Shown here: positions 15,833 through 60,283 of the stretch, piece after piece | How positions within the stretch are numbered: position 1 is the first letter of the stretch | Layout of the letters: each line of letters opens with the position of its first letter | IMG/VR virus record: IMGVR_UViG_3300049048_000052 | Coordinates: 187,781-251,780 of that record | DNA: 64,000 bases | Direction: 5' to 3' (one strand) | The notes under the pieces: generated by a model | Told to the model about the DNA's origin: nothing | The model's database searches: none | Seen by the model: the letters and a program-made list of their open reading frames with translations, nothing else | Translations under genes and position numbers: made by a program

Positions 15833-16526
15833 TACAGAAACTCTTATTAATAGTCTATTGTCCTTTAGGGATAGGTTCTCAGAACAACTGCTTAAGTCTA
15901 AGTTAGCAGGTGTTGATGTATGGTCCGGACTCATGGAGGAGTTGGATGGTCTTATAGATGTATTTGATAAGCCTATAGAAATTGATCCTGCATATCTTAA
16001 GAAGTCCTCCATTATCGATAGGTTAGGCCTGGGCTTCCAGGTTATAAAGCTATATGAAGAGGACTATAAGGAGATACAGATAGGTGAGATTCTTACTAAT
16101 CAGACAGGCTTAACTATCACTACTGCTGAGGTTAAGAAGTGGCTTGAGATTAATAAGAATGATCTAACTATTAGTAAACCTGTGGCCCTTAAAGGTTCAG
16201 TCTTTGATACTCAGGCTAGGATGCAAGAGATCTTTGAGGATTTATATATCCGTATAGATACTATTAGAGCTAAGAGTGAGGATGCCTATAAGGGTAATAA
16301 AGTAAGTAAGGATGAGGTTGAACTAGAGTATTTAAAAGAAGTAAGACAATTAGTTAAGGACGCCGCTAATATAGTATCAGCAGTGTCCACCATGAATAGG
16401 GTTAATGACTTCCAAAAGTTAGTCATAGAAGTAATAGGTCAAGTAAGTCCGGCCGCCCAACAACAACTATTAAGAAAGCTGAATGAGCATAGAGTAATTA
16501 TGGGGAGTTTAATACCTCCTAGTTAG
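15825..16526 (+). CDS. Helical hypothetical protein
   Basis: Long ORF coupled to the HTH gene; last gene of the + arm. Confidence 0.75.
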   Translation: MTNTETLINSLLSFRDRFSEQLLKSKLAGVDVWSGLMEELDGLIDVFDKPIEIDPAYLKKSSIIDRLGLGFQVIKLYEEDYKEIQIGEILTNQTGLTITTAEVKKWLEINKNDLTISKPVALKGSVFDTQARMQEIFEDLYIRIDTIRAKSEDAYKGNKVSKDEVELEYLKEVRQLVKDAANIVSAVSTMNRVNDFQKLVIEVIGQVSPAAQQQLLRKLNEHRVIMGSLIPPS

Positions 16527-19500
16527 TTCATCATTAGATGGGCCGTAGAAGGATCAAAAGCCTTATTAATTAAGTATTGTTTAGCTGTTGACTCTAAATC
16601 ATTGTCAACAGCTTTTTGTTTGCCTACACTCACGTCCTCTTCCTTCTTATTGACTTTTAGACCCTGTTTAATGATGGGTTTATTACCAGTTTGTACCTGA
16701 GCATTAAAGTTAGTGCTATCTTCAGATCTAGATGTAACTGATTGTTTGGGTATACTTATACTAAACTCTTGATTCCTTCTAGCGGTTGTGGATGTTATTA
16801 AGGCATTAACCTCAGCTAAATTACTAATGATACCGGCATCCTCAAGTTGCCTCATAGACTTAACATCCTTAACTAATATCTTGATATTAATATCGGATGT
16901 ATTCTTAAGAACCTGAACAGCCTGGGCTGCTAGGGTCTCCTCGAATCTCCTCTCAGAGGCCTGTATATCCTTATAGTTATTAGCAGACTTAGCCATAGTA
17001 CGCCACATATAACGACCTACTATGGATTGGTTATAGTACTGAGCCCTTATCTCAAATTCCCTGGATATAGTACTATCAGCCATAAAGTTCATAGGTCTGA
17101 TGTTACCAAGGTTACGTGACCATAGATCCTTATATGGGCTGTCACTAACTGCTTGACCGTATAAACTTGGACTAGTAAATAAAGCAGCAGTTTGTTTCCC
17201 AGTAGGATCTGCAGCTCCTTGCAACAATGTCTTATACTCTGCATCTATAACCTGCTGTGCTGTCCCTATCATAAAGGGTGAACCTGGATGGGAGAAGCCA
17301 TATCTAGGTTGCTCGGTTATGCTATTAGGGGAGGAGGCTATCATTGCACCAATAGGCACACTACCTATCTTCCATGCGCTAACTACTCTACTAATGGTAG
17401 TGGCAACATTAGCTATTGCATCTGGGAACATTAGGCCCAAGACTCCACCTACTCCAGCAGCAGCAAGACCTATAATACCCACCGCAGCCCAACCACCTAC
17501 AGCACCAAAAGCTAATAGTCCAACTCCAAATGCAGCCCCCGCTAGTCCGGTACCTACCGCCATAGTGGCCCCTGCCTTACCCCTATCTCCTGCTATCATA
17601 TGACTGACTGAGGGTAAGGCCTCACCAAAGAGGTAACCTACTCCATCGCTTACAGCATAGTAGCTATCACCTATAAACTTAGTGAAGCTCTTATAACCTG
17701 ACGTGTTGCTAGCCTTATCCATAGCAGGCGCTACAAACTTCTTCCATAGTGCTATACCCCCCGCTGTAATAGCTGCTGCGCCTAGTAATCCGAGTATTAC
17801 TAATCCCACAGGAGGAATTGTTACACCCGTGGCAGCTGCTGTAGCACCGGTACCCGCTGCAGCACCACCTATAGTCAAACCCCCCGCCGCAAGTATGCCT
17901 GCCCACCAGGTACTTATTGCGGTCATAGCCTTACCTATTCCTAATGTAGCTAGGTAGCCCAGACCTATAGATGCAGTTACATTAGTAACCGTACTACCTG
18001 CTTCGTTTCTTATCAAAGCTAATTGGGATCTACTAATGTTAGGGTTATCTTGGGCGGCAGCTAAACGGCTAAAGCTTGAGAATATATCAAAGGCTTGGAA
18101 CGTATCGGTTATCAAACCTATTACGTTGACCAGTTCAAATAGGCCACCACCCCAACCAGCCTTAGCCTTTATAGACTTACTAAGTGTTCCTCCCCTAACT
18201 ATCTCAGCAGGATCAGATACTTTTACTGTTGTTGAGGTAGATATGGTACCTTTATTAGCCTTAGGTCTAACTGTAGATGACATAACGTTACCTGCAAATT
18301 TGATAACGTTCTCTATCTCCCCTTGTAGTGCTTGAGAATAATCAATGGAAACTACTCTACCCAGACCTCCTATATTATTTATTAGGTTACCAAAGGCAGG
18401 GGACTTAGTTACTTCCTGTAAGACCTTCTCCGTAAGTACTTTTATACTTGTGGTCTGGTCAGCATTCATAGAGTGGATGAGTTGTTGCTCTATCCTGTCA
18501 GACCAACCAAAGAAGCCCCCTCCTCTTACTTCCCTTTGGAGTACATCCTCTACAGTCTTTTCTAGAGACTTCTTAAGTTCCTCCTTAGCACCAACTAACT
18601 GAGGCATAGCCTTCTCTAGATCCTGTGGGGTATCTAATCTAAGATTAGGATCACTAAGATCTAGGTCAGGATTAAGTAGGGCTACTAATCTTACTTTCTT
18701 ACCATTTATATCTACTTGGATATCTGTAATAGCCTCAAAGTAATTATCTACTAACTTGTTAAGTTGTTCTCTATACTCTACTCTAAGCTTATCTATATAT
18801 TCAGATCTAGAGTCTCCTATAGAGGGTGCCTGCTCAGCTAACTTCTGATTAACCGTAGTCCTCATATTATCCAGGAAGCTCTTATCCGCATCAGCACCAT
18901 ACATCTTACCCATATAAGAGTTCTGTATGGCTACCTCCATCTGAGCCATAGCATCATTGATAGCCTTAATATTAGATAGATCCCTTGTTGACCGACCAGT
19001 CAGTAAGGTGTTATTCATCTGGAAGTATCTGGAACCCTTATGCACAATTAGCTTTGGTCTACCACCTTCCTCCATAACAGATCCATATAAACCTCTCTGT
19101 TGTCTAACTGTAAAGGAGTAGGGTGAGTCTGGGGCTCCTCTTGTGCCTCCCTTGGTATACCAAGGCTCATTCAGTAGTCTGTCAACTTCCTGTTGAAGTT
19201 GATTAAATTGCCTCCTGGCATTCATAGTGGTTAACATAGACATTCCCATAGTACCAACAGCGGCACCTAGGAATACGTAGAGTGGATACTGTAGGGGTCC
19301 TATACTAGAGGCTACCATAGAGAGTCCATAGGCGAATCCTGAAGGTATAAAGGATCCTTGACCGTTATCATCGCTAGGGACAAATGGACTATACATATCA
19401 GCCCATTGGCTAGGATCTGATACATAGGTAGGCAGGCCTCTTAATCTACCTGTCTTAGCATCCTTCTCAAAGAACTTAGCGCTAACAATCTTAATGTCTC

Positions 19501-22500
19501 TAGTAACATTACCAAAACTATCATTAAATATCTTATATAGATTCTCTCTATTACCATTCATCATATCCATAATGATGCCGACGGCGTCCTTATGGTTCAT
19601 AGCCCTTATTAGCATGTCACTTACCAAGGACTGACTAGGCTGGAAACTCATATGGGCCGTCATCTTACTTCTGTAATCTATAGCCCCGGCCACTAAGTCG
19701 TCACCACCTATAAGACCTAATACAGACTCATCTACCTTACTAATCTTCCTTCTCTCCTTGAGAGGCTGAAGATGAGCGGTAACGCTCATAAGATTAACGG
19801 CTGCCTTCCTAAGATCCTTCTCAGCTAACTTGGATAGACCGCTCTCAGAGTTGGCAGCATTAGATACTGCCTTTAGGGCTTTTATAGTATTGATAGCTAG
19901 ATCATTATTACCCGCGAATGATTCCTTGAATAGGAAAGCAGCAGACATAGAATAGACTGCGGTAGATATATCCTGACCGGCGGATTGCATCTGAATATAC
20001 ATACTATTTCTAGTACCATACTCACCAGTCCTGAATGTCACACCAAATAGGTTGTAGAAGTTAAGGAAGGCATTGGGTTCGTCTAGGATAAATAAACTAC
20101 TTATATCCTTCCATATCTTGTTGGCACCTGAGTTTCTATCAGGTCCCTTAACTAGTTTCCTGTACTTAACTGGAGAAGCAGATAGACCGAATGAGCTGCC
20201 AGGTACCATAGGGGTGGGTAAGGGGCCCATACGTTCTATACTTCTATCCTGACCGGTTACTAATCTGAATGTGTCTGCTAATATAGAACCTAGATATTGT
20301 AAGGGTTTAATACCCGTATTGAAGCCAGTCTCTAGACCATCGAATATATTATTTATGGCCTCCCTATTCTGACCGCCACCAGTTAATAGGGCTGCAGTGG
20401 TTGCCGTGCCTAATCCTAACCAAGCTAGACTCCTAATGGCCCTCCTACTTAGTAATGTAGGTCTTACCCTTCTGTTAACAGCGCCAGCCTTTCTAGCTAA
20501 TGAGGATAGACCCTCTCCCACATTAGGATCGTTATGATCACCCCTTATAATCTTTATGAGGGCATCCTTATCTCCATCAGTGGCAAGATTAAATACTTGC
20601 TCTCCACTGTCTACCTTCATGGCATTGGTCTTAGCCATCTGTTGAGATATCCTATGGATATCCGCATCAGCCTTGGCATCAGGACTATTGGCGACCTCAT
20701 GCATTCTAGATGCCATATCTATAATATATGCACTATCCTGAGCCAGTGCTCTTTCATGTAGCTTCAACCACCAATGTCTAAGAGCCTGGACTCCTTTTGG
20801 TCCCGCAGGGGTATTCTTAGTCTTCTCTAGTATATTGGCATATGCATCTAGGGTATCTGCATTTGACATACCCATCTTACCCATGCCATAGGTGATGGAT
20901 GTCATAGTGGCAGCATACATACTCATGACGCTGAGTCTATAAACTATATCCTCCCTACCATCATACTTGTCCATATCCCTAGAATAGCCAAAGTTAGGAT
21001 CTGTAATGGCATAGGCTATACCGGCAAATAGACCAAAGACCTTGGCTCTACCACTATGTCTCAAGTTATATATAGGCTTACCCATTCTGTTCCAGAGAAA
21101 GCTACCAGTAGATGCTACGGTCCTCTGTAAATGAGTGGGCATCCTGTTGTACATACCTCTAGCAGATAGACGGGCTAGTCTAGCTGCACTAGGTATAAGA
21201 TTCTTAGATAGTTCGAATACTTCTGGGCCTAATATGGTCAGGGCTGGTCCTACAGTAAAGGTTCCTAATAGGCCGCCCATAGTTATGTCAGCAGGATCCT
21301 TACGACCTAATAAGGCTGCGCCAGTACTTCCTAGTATGGAACCTACGTACATGCCCACCATACCTTTGAGGGCCAAAGACTTAAATAACTGGGCCTGTGT
21401 TGGGGCTTTAAAGACGGGAAGGCTCTTATTCATAGCATTAGCTATACCTCCGTAAACCCCCAGGTCAGCAACCGCCATACCCCTAACTATACGATAGGCT
21501 GTTGCCGGTATAGCCTCAGCAGCCCTAGTCCCATACCTTATAATCCTATTGGCTGTCTCATAGGATTTAGTAATGGAAGTCATGCTTATCATGCCAGGTT
21601 TGTAGCTACCAGATGGTCCTAGCTTGCTGTCTATAAGATTACTCAACATCTGGCCCACCGCTACAGTTAGGGTAGCAGTGCCTGTCAGTAGACCTACACT
21701 CTGTATGAAATCTATGGTGTTTGACTGTTCATTATATGCAACACCTAAGCCAAACATACCCCCACCCCTATATATCTTTATAGGTAGTTGGGTACTAATG
21801 GACACACCAAATATAGGGGCGGATTGGATACCTACAGAATAATAACTAGTTCCACCTTTGCTATTATCAGGCGCTCCATTAGGTAAAGTAGGACGACCCT
21901 TAATAGTCTCTGCTAAGAAGAACTGTATAAATGGTAGGGGTGACTGTTTAGCTATAACTTGTACAGTTGGGCCCATTCTATCTTGGTCTAATGCAGGTAG
22001 TACCTTTGATAGTTCACCGCCGTAGAATGCCGCCATTAACTCCAGGTTAGAGGGTCTTTGACCACTATCTAGTCTCTCCTTAACTAACCTCTTGAAGTTA
22101 GCTATCTGGCTAATGGCGCTAGCCATAGCAGGATCTACCCTATGCATTCCAGTACCAACATCGGTCAATCTAATACCGATTGCATTGGTTATAAATCCTA
22201 AGGCCCCTCCAGCTAGAGCACCTAGTATTATACCTCTACCACTCTTGGTTAGAGACCCTAGACCTGCAGCCCCTGCTGCACCAAATATAAGAGGATCAAG
22301 ACTACCCCTGCCACCCTCCTGGAAGAGACTACTGCTAGTAGATGTCCAGTTCCTAGAGAGCTGCAATAAACCTGCAGTAGCACTACGAGCCCCTTGGGTG
22401 GCTAACATACCTACACCAAAGACAATAGCAGTATTCCTGTTGATATCACCCATCATACGTATGACAGGTTTCTCATAGGTTATAGCCCCGTTAATAGCTA

Positions 22501-25408
22501 CCTTACGGAATAACTGGAAACTCCTAGTTACCTTATCTCCGTCCATCATGGCTAAATGGAATACGCCTGCTACACCTTTGGCGGCACCTTGCATATCCTC
22601 ATCACTTATCAGCTTAAAGCCTATATTACCTTTAGTAACCTTAAGCAGGGCCTCGACAGCCTCACCCTTAATAGAATAGGGAACAGTCACTGGTCTCCTC
22701 ATACCATGGGCAACATGTCTAGCCAGCATGAGCATACCCCCAGCATAGGCAGAGCTAACTAAAACGTTAGATGCCATCTCACTAGGAAATATGCTTATAG
22801 TCGGTAAGAAACGACCTGCCGTGAACTCAGGTGCTAGTCCATACTGACCTGTTGTGACTGAGGCTGCTATCTGGGTAAATATAGAGGCTCCACCTGATGA
22901 CTGGAATAGCTCATTACCTACTATGGCTATATCTAGAGCGAGGATGGCATACATAGCTATCTTGGCCTTTGATCTGGATAGACTAGGTTCGGAACCTATT
23001 CCAGGCCTTAGCAGATCCCCTGCAGTACTTGCGGTCATCTGCATTATCTTAGACTCTGCTATCCTTTCAGATAACTTAGATACAGTGTCTACCTCATAGC
23101 CATGTCCCTTAAGGAAATCCTCATATTCAATCATGGCATCGAATAGTTGGGTAGGTAATGCATCTAGCTTGAACGCTTTAACTACTCTAACGTCTCCGTT
23201 GTCACTCCATTCTAGGTTAGTGGCCCCTCCACTTATTAGGGATTCCTCTGCAGCTCTAAATGCAGATGTTACCCTATTAAGTTTCTTAGCGACTGCAGCC
23301 TGAGTATTAACCCTAGCAGTTCCCTCTACAGCCGCCATTTGAATGGCCCTAAATAGACCTTTAGCTTTTCTATGTATAGCAGAGCCTACATTATCGCTAC
23401 CTGTGCCCGGCATGACCTCAGTCTTAGAGAACATACCACCTAATCCATTGGCACCCAAGAACACCTTCTGCATGTAGTCAGTTGCCTGGGCAAAAGATAG
23501 TATGTTGCCAACCATTAAAGGCTTAGCCCCTGATTCGTCTATACCTCCAAATATCCTCCAATTAAGGGGATTAAGTGGTACTGCATCAAGGACACCCTGT
23601 AATGCTCTAGCTACATTCTGCTGTCTCTCAGCACCTACGTTAGTAAGCATGATGACAGCCTCATCCTTACCTATAGTCTTAGCTAGCTTGGGATCCTGCA
23701 GAGCATCGTATAAGTCCTGAAGATTACCGAACTTATTGTTATGTACCTGTAGACCTACAGGTCTACCAACCTCTGCTATAAGTTTATCTATAGCATCAAC
23801 AAATGTTCTGGAATCCTCACTACCTGCCCTATAAGGATTTATGTGCTCTACTAGGAACGGTTTGACTATGGTACTGAGTAATATCTCAGCCCTCTTTCTA
23901 AAGAAGGCTGAGTTAGCATGATAGGGAGTTAAACTAAATGAACTTATATCATAGAATTCTTTATTACTACCTTGAAGGTCTATTAGTCTTTTAACTACAG
24001 AGGCCTTGAGGGATGTACCATCCTTTTCACCCCAATGTTCTAGACCTAACCCCAGGTTAGCTGCGGCCCTTCTTCTAAGTGCTTCTGGCATAGTAGGACC
24101 ATCACTAGCAAATGCCAGGTCAAGAAGATCCTGTGTCTGGTTCTTGAAGCTCTCCCCTAATATAAGGTTTAAGGGTTCCCCCACTGCCAGGTAGAGGGAT
24201 ACTGCTGCTGCAGAGCTTAATGCTAAGTTAGTACTAAAGCCTAATAAGCTCTCAAAGAATCCAGCCTTAGGTTCTTTATATGAAGCACCCCTAGACATAT
24301 CCTCTGATAACTTAGCAGAGTCACTCCTAGGATCTGTGTAATAAAGATAGGTCTTATCTAGTACTCTACCTATAGCGCCTGTGAGGGATGGTAGGAATCC
24401 TAGTTCATCTTTATACAATCTACCTAAGCCCACAGGCATAAACCAGTGTTCATTAAGCCACATACCCAGGCCGGGTGTTGTAAGCTCAACGTCAAACCTA
24501 CGAACAGCGTAGGGTGTTTGTTGTTGGACTAGATCTGTCTTCCTAGCAATAGCTATTCTATATAGGGCGCCTAGGACTGCAGTATTATCATTATTAATAA
24601 TCTCAGTAGGCATACCCCCCTGTCTCATCATATTGTTATGAAGAGCTACAGCATAGAAGTAAGAAGGGCCCATCTGTGAAGGGACTGATAGACCCCCTGT
24701 TACATTGGTGTCATCAAATAAGGTTACTAATTGAGGGTTATCTACGCCGTACTTCTGGGCTAGGTGAGTAGCATTGTAATAGGCTACCTGCCTCAGGTCT
24801 TCTCTACGAGATGTACCTAATAACTGTAGAACACCGTTCTTATATTTAACAGGATTAACATAGTTACGATTTGAGTATATGCCCACACCGTTGACTATAT
24901 TGGAGACGGCAATACCTTCCATCTCCTCTGTCATTACAGTAGGATCATAGAAAGGATCTCCCTTAAAATAAGGATGAGCATAACCTCTCTTAAGTAGTTC
25001 CTGGGATAGATCTCTACCATCCTCAGTCATTACCTTGGCAATAGGACGGCCATTGTTATCTAACCCTCTAATATAGAGGGTTACTTCCTTGCCCTCTACA
25101 AGAGACTGAGTATAATCTGTTGCTGCGGTCCCGTATGGTTGGGATCTTAGCTTATTAATCCTGCTTAATAGGTTACCATTATTCCAGAATTGAGAACCGT
25201 GAGCCGTCTCAGGTGTGTCTGCACCTGAGAGTCTAACGACTCCCTTAATATCAGGATCAGCAACGCTGAAGGTGTCGCCGTCTATTACTCTAGTAACCCT
25301 TGTTTTAACAATACGAGAAGTTCCAGTGGTGAATGAATAATTACCATTACCACTGGAACTGTCATTATTTAACAGGTTATCAAACTGTGAAGATATAACT
25401 TGAGGCAT
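16523..25408 (-). CDS. Giant 2961-aa virion protein: N-terminal thermonuclease (SNase) domain plus many Gly/Ala-rich hydrophobic helices (ejection or tape-measure-like)
   Basis: VTRVIDGDTF, VRLSGADTPET, DNNGR and ELLKRGYA; more than 12 hydrophobic glycine-zipper-like segments. Confidence 0.85.
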   Translation of the reverse strand: MPQVISSQFDNLLNNDSSSGNGNYSFTTGTSRIVKTRVTRVIDGDTFSVADPDIKGVVRLSGADTPETAHGSQFWNNGNLLSRINKLRSQPYGTAATDYTQSLVEGKEVTLYIRGLDNNGRPIAKVMTEDGRDLSQELLKRGYAHPYFKGDPFYDPTVMTEEMEGIAVSNIVNGVGIYSNRNYVNPVKYKNGVLQLLGTSRREDLRQVAYYNATHLAQKYGVDNPQLVTLFDDTNVTGGLSVPSQMGPSYFYAVALHNNMMRQGGMPTEIINNDNTAVLGALYRIAIARKTDLVQQQTPYAVRRFDVELTTPGLGMWLNEHWFMPVGLGRLYKDELGFLPSLTGAIGRVLDKTYLYYTDPRSDSAKLSEDMSRGASYKEPKAGFFESLLGFSTNLALSSAAAVSLYLAVGEPLNLILGESFKNQTQDLLDLAFASDGPTMPEALRRRAAANLGLGLEHWGEKDGTSLKASVVKRLIDLQGSNKEFYDISSFSLTPYHANSAFFRKRAEILLSTIVKPFLVEHINPYRAGSEDSRTFVDAIDKLIAEVGRPVGLQVHNNKFGNLQDLYDALQDPKLAKTIGKDEAVIMLTNVGAERQQNVARALQGVLDAVPLNPLNWRIFGGIDESGAKPLMVGNILSFAQATDYMQKVFLGANGLGGMFSKTEVMPGTGSDNVGSAIHRKAKGLFRAIQMAAVEGTARVNTQAAVAKKLNRVTSAFRAAEESLISGGATNLEWSDNGDVRVVKAFKLDALPTQLFDAMIEYEDFLKGHGYEVDTVSKLSERIAESKIMQMTASTAGDLLRPGIGSEPSLSRSKAKIAMYAILALDIAIVGNELFQSSGGASIFTQIAASVTTGQYGLAPEFTAGRFLPTISIFPSEMASNVLVSSAYAGGMLMLARHVAHGMRRPVTVPYSIKGEAVEALLKVTKGNIGFKLISDEDMQGAAKGVAGVFHLAMMDGDKVTRSFQLFRKVAINGAITYEKPVIRMMGDINRNTAIVFGVGMLATQGARSATAGLLQLSRNWTSTSSSLFQEGGRGSLDPLIFGAAGAAGLGSLTKSGRGIILGALAGGALGFITNAIGIRLTDVGTGMHRVDPAMASAISQIANFKRLVKERLDSGQRPSNLELMAAFYGGELSKVLPALDQDRMGPTVQVIAKQSPLPFIQFFLAETIKGRPTLPNGAPDNSKGGTSYYSVGIQSAPIFGVSISTQLPIKIYRGGGMFGLGVAYNEQSNTIDFIQSVGLLTGTATLTVAVGQMLSNLIDSKLGPSGSYKPGMISMTSITKSYETANRIIRYGTRAAEAIPATAYRIVRGMAVADLGVYGGIANAMNKSLPVFKAPTQAQLFKSLALKGMVGMYVGSILGSTGAALLGRKDPADITMGGLLGTFTVGPALTILGPEVFELSKNLIPSAARLARLSARGMYNRMPTHLQRTVASTGSFLWNRMGKPIYNLRHSGRAKVFGLFAGIAYAITDPNFGYSRDMDKYDGREDIVYRLSVMSMYAATMTSITYGMGKMGMSNADTLDAYANILEKTKNTPAGPKGVQALRHWWLKLHERALAQDSAYIIDMASRMHEVANSPDAKADADIHRISQQMAKTNAMKVDSGEQVFNLATDGDKDALIKIIRGDHNDPNVGEGLSSLARKAGAVNRRVRPTLLSRRAIRSLAWLGLGTATTAALLTGGGQNREAINNIFDGLETGFNTGIKPLQYLGSILADTFRLVTGQDRSIERMGPLPTPMVPGSSFGLSASPVKYRKLVKGPDRNSGANKIWKDISSLFILDEPNAFLNFYNLFGVTFRTGEYGTRNSMYIQMQSAGQDISTAVYSMSAAFLFKESFAGNNDLAINTIKALKAVSNAANSESGLSKLAEKDLRKAAVNLMSVTAHLQPLKERRKISKVDESVLGLIGGDDLVAGAIDYRSKMTAHMSFQPSQSLVSDMLIRAMNHKDAVGIIMDMMNGNRENLYKIFNDSFGNVTRDIKIVSAKFFEKDAKTGRLRGLPTYVSDPSQWADMYSPFVPSDDNGQGSFIPSGFAYGLSMVASSIGPLQYPLYVFLGAAVGTMGMSMLTTMNARRQFNQLQQEVDRLLNEPWYTKGGTRGAPDSPYSFTVRQQRGLYGSVMEEGGRPKLIVHKGSRYFQMNNTLLTGRSTRDLSNIKAINDAMAQMEVAIQNSYMGKMYGADADKSFLDNMRTTVNQKLAEQAPSIGDSRSEYIDKLRVEYREQLNKLVDNYFEAITDIQVDINGKKVRLVALLNPDLDLSDPNLRLDTPQDLEKAMPQLVGAKEELKKSLEKTVEDVLQREVRGGGFFGWSDRIEQQLIHSMNADQTTSIKVLTEKVLQEVTKSPAFGNLINNIGGLGRVVSIDYSQALQGEIENVIKFAGNVMSSTVRPKANKGTISTSTTVKVSDPAEIVRGGTLSKSIKAKAGWGGGLFELVNVIGLITDTFQAFDIFSSFSRLAAAQDNPNISRSQLALIRNEAGSTVTNVTASIGLGYLATLGIGKAMTAISTWWAGILAAGGLTIGGAAAGTGATAAATGVTIPPVGLVILGLLGAAAITAGGIALWKKFVAPAMDKASNTSGYKSFTKFIGDSYYAVSDGVGYLFGEALPSVSHMIAGDRGKAGATMAVGTGLAGAAFGVGLLAFGAVGGWAAVGIIGLAAAGVGGVLGLMFPDAIANVATTISRVVSAWKIGSVPIGAMIASSPNSITEQPRYGFSHPGSPFMIGTAQQVIDAEYKTLLQGAADPTGKQTAALFTSPSLYGQAVSDSPYKDLWSRNLGNIRPMNFMADSTISREFEIRAQYYNQSIVGRYMWRTMAKSANNYKDIQASERRFEETLAAQAVQVLKNTSDINIKILVKDVKSMRQLEDAGIISNLAEVNALITSTTARRNQEFSISIPKQSVTSRSEDSTNFNAQVQTGNKPIIKQGLKVNKKEEDVSVGKQKAVDNDLESTAKQYLINKAFDPSTAHLMMN

Positions 25409-25468: not shown

Positions 25469-26293
25469 CTATGCTCTAGGATCAAATACACCAGGGTAAT
25501 AGCTCTGGCTGTATAGGTTATAGCTGGAGGCTTGATCTAAGAAGATTATATCCCTGAATAATGGAGGCTTAACATAGTTGATAGTATATACCTCATTTAA
25601 TAGAGGGGCCGCACCATTAAACCTAATGCCTAATTCGGTATAGACTTCCTCATTTATAGACTGAGTAATAAGGTTATCTACAACTTCCTTATACACTGTA
25701 AAGTCTTGATATATGGTGCCGTCTGAGCCTACTACTGAAACAATATCAATTATATCCAGGGGTATAGCATCATAAGTTCCGGAGCCTCTACTTATATCGA
25801 TACTACCTAACTTAGGTGATTTATGTGCATAAGAGAACCATTCTTTATAGTTGAGAGCAGCATACCCATTGCAAGAGGGGACTAGCCAATTCTCTGTCTT
25901 AATTAGCTTCTTCCTAGGTATGGTCTTATTAACATATGATGAACCCTTAACTATGGGGTACCATATCCAATATTCAACAATATAACAAGAGTTAATACCC
26001 CAACCAATAGAAGGTGTTAGGGATAGTCTTATTAGATAGCGGTTACCTGAAGATGTTGCAACCTTGTCTATAGGGTAAACCCTATCATTGTCATGTAACA
26101 TACCTAGGGAGTTGTATGTTTGAGGCGCCTTTATTCTTAAGTAGAAACGGGGTGCCATAGTAAGAATCTTAGCCCCTAACTCATTAAGAAAGAGGGGTAG
26201 ATTGGTTTGTATGGTGGTGCTAAATTCCTTAGGGTCAGATGCCTCATTAGGCACTATTAAATCTGTTATGTCTGTATATATAGGGGTCTTCAT
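25469..26293 (-). CDS. Hypothetical virion-associated protein
   Basis: ORF coupled to terL in the late arm. Confidence 0.75.
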   Translation of the reverse strand: MKTPIYTDITDLIVPNEASDPKEFSTTIQTNLPLFLNELGAKILTMAPRFYLRIKAPQTYNSLGMLHDNDRVYPIDKVATSSGNRYLIRLSLTPSIGWGINSCYIVEYWIWYPIVKGSSYVNKTIPRKKLIKTENWLVPSCNGYAALNYKEWFSYAHKSPKLGSIDISRGSGTYDAIPLDIIDIVSVVGSDGTIYQDFTVYKEVVDNLITQSINEEVYTELGIRFNGAAPLLNEVYTINYVKPPLFRDIIFLDQASSYNLYSQSYYPGVFDPRA

Positions 26294-28047
26294 TATAAGC
26301 CTTTCCTAACCTTACCTATTGCATTACCCATCTTTAGCACACGTTTGAGGTCATTGGGTGTTTGAAGTTTACGGGTATTACTATTTGATACCTTGGTAAC
26401 AGAACCCATAACCCCAGATACTATACCCGATTGCACCTGATAGTTATAACAGTTATATACTGCAAGGCAGATAGCATCAGCTATATCCTTGCCAGCATAA
26501 GGGTGGACTATCTGCTTATTGGGCTTAAGAACTAGTTCAGAGAGCTCAGCCTTAATATCCCCTGTCCAGGTACTATCCTTAGGGAATATGAGAAGGTTCT
26601 GATTAAGCAAATCTCTAAGTAAGGTGTAGTATAACAATTGCTTCTCTCTACTTGAAGATATCTCTGCGGTAGGTATACCCTGCATATGTAGCTTCTGTAT
26701 AAGGGATGCTGAGTTAAAGCTGTCAAAGGTTACCTTCTTAACGCCCCTTGATCTACATAAGAGTAAGAGTTTATCCTCTATATCAGTAAATGAGACCACT
26801 CTCTTAATGCCCTTCTGGTCAGTCCTAGGTTGCCACTTAAGGACTCCGTCTATTTGTATACCCCATCTACCATCCTCTAATTTAACAGAGCGGGATATAG
26901 CAAGGGCAGCACTATCTTTCTTAAGTGCAGGGTCTACATGTATAAAGGAATGCAGACTAACATCACTAAAGAGACGATCTATCTGTATACCAACATATTC
27001 CCTCCTGTCTCCATTAACCTCTAGATCTAGATCAACACCCCTAGCATCAAATGCAGAGGGACCTGTGCATGCTTTCTCTACATTGGTGCGAGATAGAAAA
27101 GTATTATGTTTACTACTTCTAATACCCTCATATTCAAGACGGGCACTAATATAATCCTTAGCGTAATCGGAGACAATAACTTGTGTACGGTCCTTACTCA
27201 TTGTAGGATTAAGCTGAAAAGTACTTAACCTAAAACCTAGACTATTAGCATCAGTCTGACTAGCTAAGTAGAGACGCTCTATAGGATCTCCTATCTCCCA
27301 TGCTGATGAGATAGCTACCTTACGTCCATGTGATTGGAAGGCAGAGGTACCTTTACCTACGTTGTCCCACATCAGGTCCGCCCCATTGGTACCAGTTTCC
27401 TTACTAGTCTCAAAACGTGCGGCTTCATCCAGGATCATACACTTAAGTGAGTACCCAACCAGTGCTCTAGAGTTAGTATGCTTAGCATATATACCTATAT
27501 TCTTAGCAGGACATCTAACCTCCTCAGATAGGATCTCTATTATGCCAGAGTCCTGCAAACCCTTAAAGTACATAGAACCTTCAGCATAACCCTTGATCTT
27601 AGCAAAGATAGTCTCTTTAGCTTGATCTTGTGACTGAGATATAACGAAGATAGCTATAGGATCATTAGGTAGAATACCATAGGTCTTAGCAGGACTCTCA
27701 AGTGTAATCAGATCATAGAACTCTTTAAGGGCTATGATAGAGGCAATGGTAGACTTAGAACCTCTTCTTCCTGCTTCAAGGACTAGGTTGATATAATGTC
27801 TGCCCTCTACCCAGGTAGTCCTATCTAAACCTAGCCATTCAGAGAGTATAGTCTTATCACTCTCGGTCAACTCTTCATTGTAGAAGGCTCTAAGTATAGC
27901 TCTCTGTTGAGGATAGAGAGTATACTGGCCATTGAATAAGACATCCTCAGCAAACTCAACGATACCCATATCATTGTTACCTCGGATGCTCATGCTAATC
28001 ATGGAGAGCATCCGGTTAAACAAGTCGTCCTGGTTTATATCCTTCAT
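26293..28047 (-). CDS. terL: Terminase large subunit
   Basis: YPQQ, Walker A GRRGSKS, Walker B ILDEAA; nuclease motifs IHVDPA, TFD and KDIADA. Confidence 0.93.
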   Translation of the reverse strand: MKDINQDDLFNRMLSMISMSIRGNNDMGIVEFAEDVLFNGQYTLYPQQRAILRAFYNEELTESDKTILSEWLGLDRTTWVEGRHYINLVLEAGRRGSKSTIASIIALKEFYDLITLESPAKTYGILPNDPIAIFVISQSQDQAKETIFAKIKGYAEGSMYFKGLQDSGIIEILSEEVRCPAKNIGIYAKHTNSRALVGYSLKCMILDEAARFETSKETGTNGADLMWDNVGKGTSAFQSHGRKVAISSAWEIGDPIERLYLASQTDANSLGFRLSTFQLNPTMSKDRTQVIVSDYAKDYISARLEYEGIRSSKHNTFLSRTNVEKACTGPSAFDARGVDLDLEVNGDRREYVGIQIDRLFSDVSLHSFIHVDPALKKDSAALAISRSVKLEDGRWGIQIDGVLKWQPRTDQKGIKRVVSFTDIEDKLLLLCRSRGVKKVTFDSFNSASLIQKLHMQGIPTAEISSSREKQLLYYTLLRDLLNQNLLIFPKDSTWTGDIKAELSELVLKPNKQIVHPYAGKDIADAICLAVYNCYNYQVQSGIVSGVMGSVTKVSNSNTRKLQTPNDLKRVLKMGNAIGKVRKGL

Positions 28048-34025: not shown

Positions 34026-36977
34026 TTAGGTTCCGTATGTAATAGAGGATAGTCTTCTAGCAAAGGGTATAACGGAGCTATCAGCAGTCTTGAAGTCTAA
34101 TCTTATTGTTAGTTTCCTTCTGAGGGTACTTATGGAGGCCCCTGATGGGCTGATATTAGATATAGCATCTGATAAGGATAATGCCTTATAAGTATAACCA
34201 TATAAGGGTATATTACCATCAAGTAGGAAGGTAGCAGCTGAATCCATGTCCATAGTCTCCCAGCTAATACCAGCATTAGAACTAAATAGAACATCGATAG
34301 ACGTACCCTTTGGTATGTATGCCTCAAAGGTAGTTTCTATATTATTATAGGCCGCCTCAAACTCTACAGTCTTACTGATCCAGGTAGAACTACGTCTATT
34401 AGCTATAGTGGTGAATGTACTAGCATCTAGTTCTAATAAAGGAGACATTTGGTTAGTGTTGTTAAGTACAACCTTTAATTCAGAGGTGCTTGCAGGTTGT
34501 TGTAAGGTGTATTCATAGCCTCTAACCAAAGCCCAAGTACCATTCTCTTTAACGTAGGTTTGTATATTAGTACCAGCAGGTAATATAACAGGCATGTTAA
34601 ATCTAACAGAGTTGTAGGGCTCTACATTCTCTATGTTAACTAATAGCTCAGACTTAGTATTAGCCATGACAGCCTTATTAAGTCTAAAGCTGAGATCCAT
34701 ATCATTATGAGGCTGCCAGCTACCCTCTTTCCTGGATAGGAGGATACCATTGAGTAGGGCTTGTGTAGTGGTTATTGTACCGTCAAGCAGCGAACGGGCC
34801 CCTATTGTAGAAACATATAATTCTAGGCCAGGTAAGTTGGGACTAATAACTAATGCATATTGACCCCTGTTGCTTATAAAGGCAGGTTTGTCTAATACAA
34901 CCTCTGTCCACTTACTACCGTTACTACTTAGTTGTATATCAGACAAACTTAAGTCTCCTATAGCTAGACATTCTGGAGTGGGTAGGCCACCATTAGCTGA
35001 GACTATAGATACCCTTGCTGCTATGATTGTGTTGTCCGTTTGTAGATTAGGAGCACTTCTTATCTTTAACCATATCGAGGTAATGCTAACAGGTTCCTCA
35101 ATAAGGAATGTTTGGGCCCAACCCTCAGTGCTTGATGCATAAGTAGTATTTAGAGGTAATACACCAGAGGCTGAATCTAGATCAGTTGTTATGGGCACTA
35201 TGGCATCGTTTATAGATCTGTACACCGCTGAGGCAGTCGATCTAGGACCTGATAGTGTTACAACATAAGTATCAAGAGCTAGATTACTTGGTATGAAGAA
35301 CTTAAGGAAAGCCATACCATCAGCCCTAGCCTTTATGGAGTTAGTGGAAGAACCCGCCAAGGTGCCATTTAATAATGTGAACTGACTTATAGCTACATTA
35401 CCAAAAGAGAGTGTAAGATTATCCTCGTTAGGTTGGAAACCCGTACATTGGACGGTTATCTCCCTAACTAATAGGTTGAGGTTCAGGCTCACCCTACTAT
35501 CATTATTAAGTGATAATGCTTTTAATATATTATCTTTAAGTGTTGGTAGAGATGATGGGGCCACCGCGCTATAAGGTATAGTAGCGGAGTCTGCTGGACC
35601 ACTACTGGGACTTATATTCATATGAGCTATAGTTCGGGTGTTGACTCCTAGGTTGACCCATGATGTACACTTAGCCTGTTCTATGTATGACTCTTCAGAG
35701 AATGAGCACATAGCGTAATTAGGTGTCCCATTACGGGCTACTATGTCTAAGGCAGTGGGAGTTAAGCCCACATTGACTATATCCTTAATACTAGTACTAA
35801 AGCCTGGCCTCAGTGCCCTAATAGAGGGCATGAAGGAAGCATTGTAAAGAGGATGGTATGTATCGCTCCTGCTAAGGTCTATTAGAGCATCTGTAAATAC
35901 GCCACTCAAATCAAATAGGTTATTATCTCCTATATCTAAAGCCTGCTTATCTAATAATAATTGGGTCATCTCCCTCTCATTACGATAGTTCTCCTCTGAG
36001 AGCAGTATAAGATCTGCATTAGTTAGGGATCTCTTCTTGGACAAAACAAGGGATATGTCCCTCTTGAATTGCCCTCCTATTAAAGTTCTATTAGTAATTT
36101 CTAGAGTAGCTAGATCTATAGTTGAGTGGGGTAAGCCGGGTACATATGTAGTAGGATCCTGCTCAGAATAATATTCTATAGTTCCTTGTTGGTTGAGCAG
36201 TATGATGTACCTAAATATTGTATTAGGTGTAGACGGAAAACTAGGTAAGTATAGGTAGGAGCCATAGGGTAAATAAACCCTGACTCCCTCTATATAAGCA
36301 ACACCTGCATTAATTGTTAGCTTACGTGTTTCTTGATCCAGGCTAACCTCCATACCGTTAGCTATGAAGTCCCCGTTCTCTTCATACCAACGCTGACTAA
36401 CCCTAGAGGATATAGCCTGGCCTATTATATTAGGGTCATATACCTTGGTAAGCTTACCGGGTCTATAGTGAAGTACATCCGGGGCCCCACCTGAAGGTCT
36501 ATTATCAATTACTGCTATAGGATAACTATCCTCATTAAGAGTAAGTCTATATCTTACAACCAATCTATGAGCCCCGTAATCCCCCTTAATGAATAAGGGG
36601 TCTCTTAGAAGCTCAGAGTTATCATCTATAAGAAAGTCTATCCTAAAGCCTAAGGATACTCTACCCTGTTTGGATACAGGTATCCGGTCGGCGGGTGCTA
36701 TGTCTATGTAGAGGCCTCCGTGGGGAGTCTCTACATATATCTGACCCTGAGATAAGTGTAATATGTTGTACTTATCATTTATCTCAATGACACTAACCTT
36801 AAGGCCCCAAGTTGGAGAGTATATACCGTAGACATAGGACGATAACCTTTGGTATTGGTAATTAAGTACAGATTGGAGTTCATGTAGCTCAGCTATTTGC
36901 AAAGGCCTATCAGGTCTGGCTAGCACCTTTACCCAACCAGACTCAGGGGTCCACCTATTAGAATATTTATTTTCCAT
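34026..36977 (-). CDS. DUF4815/VrlC-like baseplate-fibre structural protein (paralog 2)
   Basis: WVKVLARPDRPLQIAELHELQ, GAHRL, EENGDF, AGVAYIEG and AQTF. Confidence 0.8.
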   Translation of the reverse strand: MENKYSNRWTPESGWVKVLARPDRPLQIAELHELQSVLNYQYQRLSSYVYGIYSPTWGLKVSVIEINDKYNILHLSQGQIYVETPHGGLYIDIAPADRIPVSKQGRVSLGFRIDFLIDDNSELLRDPLFIKGDYGAHRLVVRYRLTLNEDSYPIAVIDNRPSGGAPDVLHYRPGKLTKVYDPNIIGQAISSRVSQRWYEENGDFIANGMEVSLDQETRKLTINAGVAYIEGVRVYLPYGSYLYLPSFPSTPNTIFRYIILLNQQGTIEYYSEQDPTTYVPGLPHSTIDLATLEITNRTLIGGQFKRDISLVLSKKRSLTNADLILLSEENYRNEREMTQLLLDKQALDIGDNNLFDLSGVFTDALIDLSRSDTYHPLYNASFMPSIRALRPGFSTSIKDIVNVGLTPTALDIVARNGTPNYAMCSFSEESYIEQAKCTSWVNLGVNTRTIAHMNISPSSGPADSATIPYSAVAPSSLPTLKDNILKALSLNNDSRVSLNLNLLVREITVQCTGFQPNEDNLTLSFGNVAISQFTLLNGTLAGSSTNSIKARADGMAFLKFFIPSNLALDTYVVTLSGPRSTASAVYRSINDAIVPITTDLDSASGVLPLNTTYASSTEGWAQTFLIEEPVSITSIWLKIRSAPNLQTDNTIIAARVSIVSANGGLPTPECLAIGDLSLSDIQLSSNGSKWTEVVLDKPAFISNRGQYALVISPNLPGLELYVSTIGARSLLDGTITTTQALLNGILLSRKEGSWQPHNDMDLSFRLNKAVMANTKSELLVNIENVEPYNSVRFNMPVILPAGTNIQTYVKENGTWALVRGYEYTLQQPASTSELKVVLNNTNQMSPLLELDASTFTTIANRRSSTWISKTVEFEAAYNNIETTFEAYIPKGTSIDVLFSSNAGISWETMDMDSAATFLLDGNIPLYGYTYKALSLSDAISNISPSGASISTLRRKLTIRLDFKTADSSVIPFARRLSSITYGT

Positions 36978-36983
36978 CTTGTT

Positions 36984-39900
36984 TTAGTACACGTATGTCA
37001 TAACGTTCTTTATAACAGCCTGCTTGGCTCTATCGGTGGTACTGATCTCTATCCTATACCTAAACTTCTTCCTGAGCTCAGTAAGTGCATAGATAGTAGA
37101 TGGCTCTACCTTAAAGTATCTAGCCTCATATAGCTGAGTACCACTGTCCACAAGAGAGACGGAGGTGTTATCTAGGGTTAACTCATACCACTCCTGGCCT
37201 TCCCATGCAAAGCCGCTAGTAGGACTGTAGAATACCTTAATATTAGCTTCAACTGGTTTCACATATCTAACTATGACATCTATCTTTTTATAGGCATCCG
37301 GATAGGTGACCATCTTACTTACTATTTGAGAGGCAGCATTAGCAGAATAAAAAGATATAGAGTTACCCTCTAGTGATATAGCAGGGCTAATAGTATCTGA
37401 GAATGTAGATAATGTAGCCCTAACTCTTAGAGAGTTCTTCTTAAAGGGTAAACATACTGTGACGTTAGGTTGGAATTTAACCCATACACTAGGAGTACTC
37501 TCGTATTCATAGGTAAGCTCTGTACCCTTTGGTACTATGTCTCTTGTATTGAGGCAGAAATAAGTTATATCAGTTACGGCATCTGATATGCCATAGGTAC
37601 CTAAGTCTACAATTACAGGACTAGTACTAAACTTAGCCCGGTCAATCTCATATGTAAGATCCTCCCGGTCTAATTCGCTAAGTATATTACCGTCCTTAGT
37701 TGTATATAGGGAGCCTTGTAGATACAGTTGGTCTCCTAAGGTTGAACCATTAATAAGATCTGGCTCTCCTAGTTGAGAAGTAAATATATTAAAGGATCCC
37801 GAGGTACTTTCTAGACCTAACGAGTAGTTTTGGTTCCTATTTATAAGGATAGGCTTAGGAAACTGGAATGTAGTCTGTAGGGCAGAATTGGTACTGTATT
37901 GATACGTATCTGCTTGGGCCCTAGTGTAAGTTATCTTACCCGGCATATCATTAGCAGACCTTAGGTATACATTAAGATCTCCATCGGATGGACCTGACTT
38001 TAATCTTAGTTTAACCCCAGTAACATAGTAATTACCGAAGGATTCAAAGGTCTGATTAATAGGACTGAATCTAATAGGATACTCCTGAGCTTTCTCTAGC
38101 TGTAGGGTACTACTATTACCAATAGCCCCTGGATCTATATTAGATACGCCTAGCCTTAGGAGATCCTCACTAATATAGTCGTTATACTCTACGGGTAATG
38201 CAGAGTTACTGGTTACGCTTATGGGTAAGGCGCCCCAACTCTTCATAGCACCTATAACTATCTGATTAAACAAATTGTTATATAGACTAATCCTAGACTT
38301 AGCATAGCCATCATTACCTACCAGCTCTATAGCTAGAACTCCGGGGGCCAAGTCAGCAGGTAAGGTTATTCTAACTGTTATAGTTCCATCAGCTTTAGCC
38401 TTAATAGCCCCTGGGTATGCAAGACTACCCGGAGTATTATTCTGTAGGACAAAGGTAGTTACAGGCTTACCCGATATCATAATTCTATAATTATCAGAGC
38501 CCGGTATTAGGCCTTCTGCCATAAGGATTAAGCCAATATTAGCCTCTATAGTAACCTGGGAGAATAAGGCAGCCAGGAAACTATTAGTTCTAGCATCTAC
38601 GCTGTTAATAGCATCACCTGATAATATAGAGTCGGAGGCCTTTTCAGCTGCCGAGGAGAAGAGACTATTAACTGAAGATACAATACTATCCACATAAGGA
38701 GAACGTGCTCCCTGTCTAAGTAATGTGCTTGTTATAGCCGTAAGGTAATCACAAGGTGTTAAACCCTTAAAGGTCTTATTATTAAATAATGTGGCACTGG
38801 AAATATATAACTTACCTCTCCTCTTAACACTATTGGAGTAAGGAGATAGCGCCATAGATCTAGTGGCCCTTGACTGAGAGATAAGGGGAACATTGGTATA
38901 GGGTAAGGTTACTACCGAATTAATACCTGTCTCATTCTTTGATACTAATCCACCTGATGTATACCTAATAGGTACATCCTTATGAATATAACCCGCGCTA
39001 ATAGACTGTATAGCAGGAACTACAGAAGCACTCCAGAGAGTGGACGAAGTATCCAACTTAGATAAGTCTTGCACTGGTTCATTGAATAGGCCTATAGGGG
39101 CGCTACCTACCGCTAAACTAGATCTCCTATATGCTTCTAGGTCTAACTTGATTATCTCTAGATTCTGAGTGTTTTGCCGTACCCTGTCTGATAATACCTG
39201 TTGATCTTGGACTGTAAGTCTACGACACTTAAGAGGTGCAATAGTAATCCTATCTGCAAACATCTTAAAGGATGATACTGCTAATAGATTATCTGGTACT
39301 GAAGGTAGTAATGGGTCCTGACTAGCCGCAGATAATATATAACCAAAGTTACCATCCTTGTCTAGAGTTATTACACCAGCCTTAGCTAGATAATAGGTAT
39401 AGCTGACAGTAAATGTACCATTATAAACATTAATGCCTTGGGCCGTCTGGGTATAGACTACTGCAGGCGTTCTACCAATAAAGATTATAGAGTCTGTACT
39501 GGAATCCAGGGTGAAATCATCGTTTATTGCTAAGGGCTGGGTATATAAAAAGGACACATAATAGGTGGTGCCGGGGGCAGGTTCAACCCCTGACAGAGAC
39601 CAATCAATCTTAGACTGATCTACTAAACGGAAGTCTATGCCCTCCGTATATGTAGTAGTACCTTGTATAACCTTGATGATTCTGAATATAGAATCATCTC
39701 CTAATAGATCTGTAGTACCAGGGGTGGTACCTCTGACTAGAGGTTTTAAGTCCTCCTGCATCTCAGCAACTAGGCTAAGTATTTCAGCAACGGGTCTAAA
39801 TCCTAGTTGGAAGGCAGTTGTAGTGCCTCCGCCACCTAGATTAGCACTAGGGATATCAGATATGATACGGCCTGCACCGGAGGCTTGATTGCTACTGTTC

Positions 39901-58031: not shown

Positions 58032-58693
58032 CTCTCTATTACCTGAGCTACTGATTGTACTGTTCTCTCGGAGAAGCCTAAACCACGACTAGCCATGACG
58101 CCTGCCTTTACCCTATCACCATTAACTACTATAGACTGGAAGGCATCCATGCCTATGACCTGATAGTCACAACAGTTAAATATCCTATCTAGTTTGTCAT
58201 AGAGGGATAGATCGTCCTTACTTATAAACTCTATAGTTGAGTCCATACCTATAACATGTGTTATGGCTGAGGTCTCTTCTCTATCTAAAGATGCCTTAAT
58301 AGTATTACTGAAGTTCACCGAGGTGACTGATTCAGATAACCTAAGAAGACTTACTGAACTAGGTATATTACTTATGATCTTCTGTTTGAAGTCAGATCCC
58401 TCTTGTTCAGTGTAGTACTTAAGAGTATCAGCATCCTCCTTACTAAATAAATAGGCAAGGAGCACCTGTACCTTAGGTGGAAATAAGAATAGGTTAACCT
58501 GACCCGCTCTAGTATCAAACATCCTAAGCTTAGGTCCCTCTTCAGGTATAGCAGTTATAGAGGATTGTATAAGGTGAGATAGTAGCTCATACTGAGCTTC
58601 ACTACCACCATCATCTGCTATAGCAGACTTAAGTAGATATTCATGTTCCCTGCCAATGTAGTAGGGGTAATTGGATGATAGTGTTGCTGCCAT
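58013..58693 (-). CDS. Hypothetical protein
   Basis: 226-aa ORF coupled to the lysin gene. Confidence 0.75.
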   Translation of the reverse strand: MAATLSSNYPYYIGREHEYLLKSAIADDGGSEAQYELLSHLIQSSITAIPEEGPKLRMFDTRAGQVNLFLFPPKVQVLLAYLFSKEDADTLKYYTEQEGSDFKQKIISNIPSSVSLLRLSESVTSVNFSNTIKASLDREETSAITHVIGMDSTIEFISKDDLSLYDKLDRIFNCCDYQVIGMDAFQSIVVNGDRVKAGVMASRGLGFSERTVQSVAQVIERWIYSI

Positions 58694-59829: not shown

Positions 59830-60283
59830 CCTCTACTCCTAAATCTATTTGTTTAGTACGGGTAAATCTGTTTAGATATCTGTATAACTTAGACTTATCA
59901 AAGTTAATGGGGTCCTCATAATAACCAGTAGTATCTATCTCTGTATGAGTGGTAATACGATCATCCTCTATACCCGTCGCAGCTACAACCATAGCTAAAC
60001 TCATATATTGCTCCTCTGTGTACCCCTGATGAGGATCCAACACCTCTGGTGACTCTAATGCAATCTGATATGCGAAGTCGTCTACTGAGTTGTTAATGGA
60101 CTCTCCATTAAATTCAGTATTAGCAGCGGCAAATGCTTTCATATTGGAGGCCACCCCATAAAGGATAATACCATCCCTGGTTATCAGGACATGGTAACTG
60201 ACGCCGGAGGATGCAGATTGTAACTCCCTTAGGGCCTGTTGTATTGGTACCCCAGTCTCATGTATAACTACTATTGGTTTCAT
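59822..60283 (-). CDS. N-acetylmuramoyl-L-alanine amidase (Amidase_2)
   Basis: VVIHET, VSYHVLI, YTEEQY, ITTH and DP zinc-ligand pattern. Confidence 0.87.
   Translation of the reverse strand: MKPIVVIHETGVPIQQALRELQSASSGVSYHVLITRDGIILYGVASNMKAFAAANTEFNGESINNSVDDFAYQIALESPEVLDPHQGYTEEQYMSLAMVVAATGIEDDRITTHTEIDTTGYYEDPINFDKSKLYRYLNRFTRTKQIDLGVEDV

Follow-up and report, generated by a model that had tools for sequence, protein, structure and literature searches.

A giant late-arm protein of a large cyanophage-like virus carries an exchangeable N-terminal nuclease and is a candidate ejected effector

What could an intact nuclease be doing at the tip of a protein of 2961 residues, encoded at the end of a phage's late gene arm? 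The question is raised by a stretch of DNA of 64,000 nucleotides (the window), which forms the final 64 kb of the 251,780-bp contig of the IMG/VR virus record IMGVR_UViG_3300049048_000052. Its minus strand holds, at 16523-25408, a single unbroken open reading frame (ORF) of 2961 codons, whose product is here called the giant. An original prediction, made from the letters alone, had reported this ORF and proposed that it encodes a packaged ejection protein bearing a nuclease at its tip; the ORF list and the translation upheld the first of these claims. Judged by its sequence, the giant is a member of the uncharacterised gp120/phrog_29513 family, to which gp120 of phage Ma-LMM01 belongs (phrog_29513, E=1.5e-62), in a probable large cyanophage-like virus. 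The chief new result of our analysis was the exchange of three nuclease types at one slot in this family. We favoured, at somewhat less than an even chance, the reading that the giant is carried in the virion, is ejected, and spans the host envelope to deliver a non-specific nuclease.

The N-terminus of the giant is occupied by a staphylococcal nuclease (SNase, thermonuclease) domain at residues 31-160 (24929..25318, minus strand). Pfam SNase (PF00565) matched residues 58-152 with E=9.2e-14 and 52.2 bits against a cutoff of 21, and was the sole Pfam domain matched on the giant at E<=0.1; three nuclease PHROGs matched as well, consistent with the Pfam call. On alignment to the S. aureus nuclease (1snq), the DGDT motif (D43-T46), R59, D64-T-P-E67, and R121 of the giant corresponded to SNase D21, R35, D40/T41/E43, and R87. 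Thus the Ca2+ ligands D21, D40, and T41 were matched by D43, D64, and T65, and the catalytic R35, E43, and R87 by R59, E67, and R121. The catalytic residues D43, D45, R59, D64, E67, and R121 were kept in 25-28 of the 27-29 SNase domains of the family. The original prediction had read the catalytic set at residues 34-146, which both the Pfam match and the 1snq alignment bore out, with correct coordinates (nt 24971-25309). It had also seen no signal peptide; hydropathy agreed, since no hydrophobic stretch is found in residues 1-400 and a signal peptide is therefore absent.

A megablast of the giant gene against phage records gave no match. At the protein level, the only phage records matched were those of the Ma-LMM01-group Microcystis phages (gp120, 2898 aa) and of Microcoleus phage My-WqHQDG (4151 aa). 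The body of gp120, of the MaMV giant, and of the My-WqHQDG giant was homologous to that of the window giant from ~residue 175 to ~2870, in segments 22-28% identical by tblastn. All of them, including the giant ORFs of MaMV, are annotated as hypothetical, and no function for the gp120/phrog_29513 family was described in the literature searched. A word-indexed protein search added four metagenomic relatives, among them P0002, which was 36% identical over the full length. When a profile of residues 160-960 was run against 1.8 billion representatives, 61 proteins were recovered (54 with E<1e-30), nearly all of them giants of 2250-6072 aa. Two distant members had rearranged layouts, one with SNase, a GHL10 glycosidase, and an M23 peptidase (P0062) and the other with an M23 peptidase (P0060). 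The N-terminal extension of another member (P0029) contained a GDSL hydrolase that was 28% identical (E=2e-19) to the GDSL domain on the baseplate protein of the window phage. A 5.4-kb stretch of the giant gene was found in one public run, labelled as a soil metagenome.

Scanning of 59 N-termini in the family revealed that the slot directly ahead of the conserved body held SNase in 24 members, PLDc_2 (a Nuc-type phospholipase D, PLD) in 19, and Endonuclease_NS (NucA-type) in 4; the N-terminal part of 1 further member held a GDSL hydrolase. In the main family the nuclease ended no more than ~40 residues from the start of the body, whatever the length of the extension preceding it, and this extension ranged from ~100 to 1900 aa between members. 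In My-WqHQDG, for example, a PLD-like domain lay at 1043-1176, directly ahead of the body and behind a 1035-aa extension. The PLD modules each contained a single HKD motif, in which the H and K of H-x-K were invariant, together with a GSHN motif, and at full length they matched just the Nuc and NucT endonucleases (1byr, E=2.9e-7; 6ehi). The NucA-type modules retained the DRGH motif, and the one in P0005 matched Anabaena NucA (PDB 1zm8) with E=7e-33. Neither SNase nor any other nuclease was detectable in Ma-LMM01 gp120.

The three nuclease types were interleaved on a tree of the bodies. Parsimony required at least 11 switches of type among the 47 nuclease-bearing members, a count which is approximate as it was taken from a FastTree topology. 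The PLD-bearing My-WqHQDG was sister to the SNase-bearing P0032, and one PLD member was nested inside an SNase clade. Because three unrelated folds with the same chemistry were repeatedly swapped at one position, the pattern shows that it is nuclease activity which is under selection at the slot. A separate observation was made in Ma-LMM01, where a second giant ORF on the opposite strand, gp80 (L005 1-6389, 3562 aa), carries an HKD-like motif, NHPKFFVSDRAALIGTMN, at residues 286-303. The motif was below significance against both Pfam and the family PLD profile; gp80 could be a degenerate PLD nuclease in a phage whose gp120 has none.

Behind the slot, conservation across 57 aligned members extended from ~residue 200 through the C-terminus, with peaks at 250-650, 800-900, 1100-1250, 1750-1950, and 2700-2800. 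AlphaFold2, supplied with a 55-sequence alignment, predicted residues 200-1300 (21509..24811, minus strand) as a compact, mainly helical, multi-domain fold (pLDDT 74.8, pTM 0.69). Its most conserved part is a predicted beta-sheet domain at residues 1148-1225 (21734..21967, minus strand) with a Q..PLP..QFF motif. Five strands were modelled there (model positions 949-1026, pLDDT ~90), and invariant Q, G, and P residues were found in columns Q956, G1002, and P1010 of alignment A6. Foldseek of the residues 200-1300 model against PDB and BFVD returned nothing at E<=1e-3, a profile search of the same residues against PDB sequences gave no match, and the language-model atlas gave no usable lead with residues 160-1100 as the query. 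Residues 1762-2961 were modelled with 5 sequences at pLDDT 33, which is unreliable, and were kept out of the fold search. The domain-wise AlphaFold modelling that the original prediction had called for was thus confident for residues 200-1300 but not for the C-terminal 1200 residues. Near the C-terminus, a conserved block at residues ~2700-2800 (17009..17311, minus strand) stood out in the conservation profile; it contains the motif RELxIRAQxYNQ and invariant-like W, G, and R residues, seen as near-invariant columns in alignment A8.

The original prediction had noted many Gly/Ala hydrophobic helices in the giant, and these were confirmed by hydropathy and by family conservation, with the string it had quoted lying at residues 2616-2650. 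A Kyte-Doolittle scan gave strong segments at 817-835, 1059-1079, 2523-2556, and 2616-2666, and when hydropathy was projected over the 57 aligned members, ~10 hydrophobic segments were kept family-wide. Six conserved hydrophobic Gly/Ala helices are scattered over 19229..22960 (minus strand; residues 817-835, 1057-1075, 1239-1256, 1346-1359, 1661-1680, and 2035-2060). The first three (817-835, 1057-1075, and 1239-1256) fell in confident helices of the compact AlphaFold2 model, and on that ground may be buried in the soluble form. The densest hydrophobic cluster, of glycine-zipper type, is located at residues 2481-2663 (17420..17968, minus strand), contains 4-6 membrane-length helices with peaks of 2.1-2.3, and is conserved in most members. 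It follows a charged helical, coiled-coil-like stretch at residues ~2200-2400 (18209..18811, minus strand; 28% K/R/D/E), which formed long helices in the low-confidence model. The language-model look-alikes of residues 2140-2961 were viral Gly-zipper clusters (0.90, 0.88) and T4_Tape_measure (0.85), followed by TMP_2, TMP_3, Tape_meas_lam_C, and phiKZ internal proteins; these are leads and not tests, as the shared features numbered 96-133, below the guide value of 170. Homology to T4 gp29, an atlas lead, was rejected for the C-terminal family profile with an hhalign probability of 0.3%. The likeness of the C-terminal third to tape measure and glycine-zipper proteins is one of features alone.

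The position of the gene was equally consistent across relatives. From 63897 down to 16523 all genes of the window are co-oriented, and the giant is the final gene of this late arm. The giant overlaps by 4 nt a replication-arm gene that runs towards it, and a PD-(D/E)XK exonuclease is among the convergent genes for replication and recombination that lie beyond. Ahead of the giant are a 274-aa partner gene (25469..26293, minus strand) and the large terminase subunit gene terL (26293..28047, minus strand), which was identified by its PHROG (E=1.7e-15) and by 50% identity to the Ma-LMM01 gp118 terminase. A hub-like gene at 62017-63897 lies ~37 kb from the giant, on the other side of terL. This arrangement, downstream of terL at the far end of the late arm and ~37 kb from the hub gene, is the one that had been described in the original prediction. 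Seven loci were compared: besides those of the window, Ma-LMM01, and My-WqHQDG, they were four from metagenomes (L007, L008, L030, and L031) that covered all nuclease types. The order terL, ~270-aa gene, giant was found in all seven, and in the loci examined the giant closed the co-oriented late arm, contiguous with the structural genes and terL. Convergent genes directly followed the giant in 5/7 loci; in L030 the genes there were co-oriented, and in L031 the sequence stopped at the giant.

The partner had no Pfam or PHROG match, and just one additional homologue was found by the word-indexed protein search. Partner proteins were homologous among SNase-type, PLD-type, and nuclease-less genomes; a role as a nuclease-specific inhibitor was therefore ruled out for the 274-aa partner, as the same family stands beside all three kinds of giant. 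In My-WqHQDG an extra 127-aa ORF, unique to this phage, lies between its 253-aa partner and the giant (L001 11077-11460), and showed no similarity to the other small proteins. In a PLD-type relative (L008 6337-9084), the terL homologue encodes 915 aa with a weak Pfam Intein_splicing match, and its alignment to the window terL fell into two blocks.

In the reading that we favoured, the giant would be made late and placed inside the particle. The head or portal-proximal space is favoured over the tail lumen because of the compact fold of residues 200-1300, the apparent excess length, the location of the gene beside terL, and the variable N-terminal extension. At infection, the giant would be pushed through the tail, and its conserved glycine-zipper helices, chiefly those of the C-terminal cluster, would insert in the host envelope as part of a conduit. 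The N-terminal sugar-non-specific nuclease would arrive on the host side in active form, where it may attack host DNA or RNA and serve host shut-off or counter-defence. The body would be the constant carrier, and the nuclease an exchangeable cartridge. How phage DNA would be spared has several possible answers: the domain may be unfolded or monomeric in the particle (the active site of a single-HKD PLD needs a dimer), or Ca2+ dependence may protect it. The need for such protection had been raised in the original prediction, and no inhibitor gene was found adjoining the giant. The ejection protein that it had proposed, packaged and tipped with a nuclease, was upheld in part: the intact nuclease, the swaps at the slot, the conserved helices, the location at the end of the late arm, and the lysin domains in distant members all spoke for it, but a place in the virion is putative, and a tape measure role is a live rival.

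Several results weigh against our preferred reading. Approximately 10 members, including the cultured Ma-LMM01, had no detectable nuclease. The body showed no sequence or fold similarity to known ejection proteins in profile searches, in Foldseek of PDB and BFVD, or in PDB sequence searches, and the literature searched offered neither a virion proteome nor imaging for any member. SNase requires millimolar Ca2+, which is far above the cytoplasmic level. No inhibitor or immunity gene that could guard packaged DNA or the producing cell adjoined the giants in the loci examined, and searches of the L030 and L031 regions, two loci with NucA-type giants, found no NuiA-like gene. The C-terminal third looked like a tape measure to the language model. 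Lastly, an ordinary tape measure gene, for which the original prediction had suggested a search, was found neither in the late arm nor between the tube and hub genes of relatives. With no other ruler candidate in the late arm, the tail would therefore be without a ruler if the giant is an ejected effector.

A broader proposal was considered possible, though doubtful. Here the giant would be a single-chain entry machine of a hitherto unrecognised class, which combines a tape-measure-like, membrane-inserting C-terminus with a novel body and a swappable SNase, Nuc-PLD, or NucA cartridge, delivered pre-made, with exchange of the cartridge driven by host inhibitors or defences. Cyanophages would then carry a polymorphic nuclease effector built on a new scaffold.

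The first rival, that the giant is the tail tape measure of the lineage, was judged unlikely. Encoded apart from the tail genes, the giant would occupy the tube lumen, reach the hub with its C-terminus, determine the tail length, exit first, and form the membrane channel; the nuclease would be an add-on like the lysin domains of other tape measure proteins. The sheath gene is directly followed by a tube-like gene of 229-237 aa, and this by the hub-like gene, in Ma-LMM01 and two further relatives, with no ruler gene between them. (With the Ma-LMM01 sheath as the query, only close Ma-LMM01 relatives were matched.) The remaining large proteins of the late arm are spike-, fibre-, or baseplate-like and do not resemble rulers. 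The tail module of the window begins with the hub-like gene (626 aa; 62017-63897, minus strand), followed by a baseplate protein (phrog_30576; 60293-62008, minus strand) with a C-terminal GDSL/SGNH hydrolase (Pfam E=3e-15). Two wall-hydrolase genes are next (together 58693-60283, minus strand), one for an Amidase_2-like protein of 153 aa and the other for a protein of 378 aa in which lysozyme and M23 peptidase are combined. Genes of 226 and 447 aa come after these, then a 1112-aa spike-like gene, a 125-aa gene, gp25-like and gpJ-like genes, and fibre- or baseplate-like proteins. As tape measure candidates, the 1112-aa ORF was rejected for its resemblance to a central spike, the 1472-aa ORF for its wealth of beta structure and its likeness to fibre or baseplate proteins, and those of 447 and 226 aa for being too short. 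The 1472-aa protein and its adjacent 983-aa paralogue (34026-41402, minus strand) both matched phrog_877 and phrog_358, and both are beta-rich and fibre- or baseplate-like.

Features of the giant itself also argue for a tape measure. Hydrophobic helices and coiled coil were found toward the C-terminus in the layout typical of tape measure proteins, with the coiled coil first and the hydrophobic cluster after it, and the C-terminal 822 residues have the tape measure and Gly-zipper look-alikes described above. The M23 peptidase of distant members is a frequent tape measure add-on. By our own arithmetic, three copies (~1200 nm3) would fill ~40% of a lumen of 4 x 230 nm, so that volume alone is no bar to this role. 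Against it, no Pfam tape measure family matched the giant at E<=0.1, the T4 gp29 comparison failed as noted, and the atlas scores are leads only. Tails of 160-260 nm are reported for relatives. That of MaMV-DH01 measures 260 nm (PMC9927357). At 1.5 A per residue, 2961 aa would predict a tail of ~440 nm, and bodies of 2500-3500 aa would be two to three times too long for tails of 160-260 nm. A tape measure is expected to be an extended helix without a large globular domain, whereas residues 200-1300 were predicted to be compact and to include a beta domain; at a pTM of 0.69, such a fold is ill-suited to a simple ruler inside a 4-nm tube. The N-terminal extension, at ~100 to 1900 aa across members, is also at odds with a ruler.

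Gene position cuts both ways. A tape measure gene would be expected in the space that separates the tube or chaperone genes from the hub genes; the giant is ~37 kb away from there with terL between it and the tail genes, and no frameshifted chaperone pair lies upstream of it. This distance was the argument made against a tape measure in the original prediction, and the distance itself was confirmed, but no other gene occupies the expected place and the late arm offers no other tape measure gene. A hybrid of the ejection and tape measure readings is also possible.

Three observations on the tail module stand apart from this comparison. The wall-hydrolase stretch is variable in relatives: some have VanY or an HNH insert there, and in others the baseplate protein has an amidase fused to it. 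A contig in the genome assembly of the cyanobacterium Calothrix sp. FACHB-1219 (JACJQF010000002.1, 359 kb; L034) contains the tail module in full, sheath through spike, and its hub-like protein is 42% identical to that of the window; the module may belong to a prophage, to a tailocin, or to a phage that was co-assembled, and it speaks for cyanobacteria as the hosts of the lineage. Two independent assemblies, the JGI contig (251,780 bp) and a Logan contig (183,128 bp), both stop exactly 103 nt upstream of the hub-like gene (window 63898-64000), and this shared end may be a physical genome end or a terminal-repeat boundary instead of a chance break.

Two further explanations place the nuclease elsewhere. 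The giant could be a nuclease that is made late, stays anchored in a membrane of the infected cell, is absent from the virion, and destroys host or competitor DNA for scavenging, superinfection exclusion, or clearing of DNA at lysis. The numerous membrane-length helices together with a non-specific nuclease would suit such a role, as would the site of the gene, where the late arm meets the convergent genes for replication and recombination with their exonuclease, and no proteome was found that places the giant in the virion. We nevertheless considered this improbable. A body of 2500-3500 aa, conserved from end to end, far exceeds the needs of an anchor, and the gene is co-oriented and contiguous with the structural genes and terL in every locus. 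The M23 peptidase, glycosidase, and baseplate-type GDSL hydrolase of some members are typical virion entry enzymes, and the giant has no signal peptide, with its first hydrophobic helix ~800 residues in.

The least probable explanation, which we thought very unlikely, is a virion-carried nuclease that acts outside the cytoplasm on extracellular or periplasmic nucleic acid, such as the extracellular DNA of sheath, mucilage, or mats. It would accommodate the three nuclease types, whose classic representatives (S. aureus nuclease, Anabaena NucA, Salmonella Nuc, H. pylori NucT) are secreted or act in the periplasm, the Ca2+ requirement of SNase, and the envelope-acting M23 peptidase, glycosidase, or GDSL hydrolase on the same scaffold in other members. 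It would also suit cyanophage relatives whose hosts form mats or colonies, and the soil metagenome label of the sole run found with a stretch of the gene. However, an enzyme inside the particle cannot touch the outer matrix before ejection, and no periplasmic substrate is known.

If the giant is ejected, its lineage would be the first of contractile-tailed phages to bring in a non-specific nuclease already made, mounted on a giant carrier that inserts into membranes, which raises the question of how the phage's own DNA escapes cutting. Repeated swaps of three unrelated nucleases at one slot are the signature of a molecular arms race. The exchange suggests that cyanobacteria, bloom formers such as Microcystis among them, have inhibitors or targets yet to be discovered, and phages of such bloom formers are studied for bloom control. 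The family also bears on a problem of annotation, in that the Ma-LMM01 group has no known tape measure gene. A single chain that is both ruler and effector carrier would be more than a variant of known packaged or ejected proteins. Cultured relatives exist.

Among known systems, the nearest are the giants of the Ma-LMM01 group (gp120), MaMV, and My-WqHQDG, which are like the window giant in their body, in the order of terL, small gene, and giant, and in the convergent replication genes downstream. They differ at the N-terminus: gp120 is nuclease-less and My-WqHQDG has its PLD behind a long extension, whereas the SNase of the window giant is at the extreme N-terminus. The slot modules themselves are homologous to S. 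aureus Nuc, Anabaena NucA, and Salmonella Nuc/H. pylori NucT with the catalytic residues kept, but unlike these secreted nucleases they lack a signal peptide and are fused to a giant carrier. Tape measure proteins with enzymes, such as T4 gp29, T5 Pb2, and mycobacteriophage TM4 Tmp, share with the giant great length, helical character, glycine-rich hydrophobic C-terminal helices, and an enzyme domain, and tape measure proteins are thought to exit the tail first and to form a membrane channel. Compared to them, the giant has no sequence or profile similarity, is encoded outside the tail module, would be two to three times too long for the tail, and has a large compact region; its enzyme is an N-terminal nuclease, whereas theirs is a wall hydrolase.

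The internal virion proteins of T7 (gp14-gp15-gp16) and P22 (gp7-gp20-gp16) unfold, traverse the tail, and rebuild a trans-envelope conduit, and in T7 gp16 a large helical body bears an enzyme domain at the N-terminus. Those podovirus proteins belong to phages without a long tail or tape measure, while the giant is one chain, in a contractile-tailed lineage, with no detectable homology to them. Packaged effectors, to which the giant may also be likened, comprise MuF polymorphic toxins (PMC5576092), polyvalent proteins (PMC5512222), P1 DarB, T4 Alt, and the N4 virion RNA polymerase. They are encoded beside portal and terminase genes, travel in the head, and enter the cell along with the DNA, and their enzyme domains are exchangeable, nucleases included. 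The giant differs from them in having no MuF (PF04233) or polyvalent signature (Pfam found SNase only), no adjacent immunity gene, a single effector slot, many hydrophobic helices, and an unrelated body; its nuclease is N-terminal, while the MuF toxin is C-terminal. Although it departs from each of these groups in features by which their members are recognised, the giant is, by analogy, likened to T7 gp16, to the enzyme-bearing tape measure proteins, to MuF toxins, and to polyvalent proteins.

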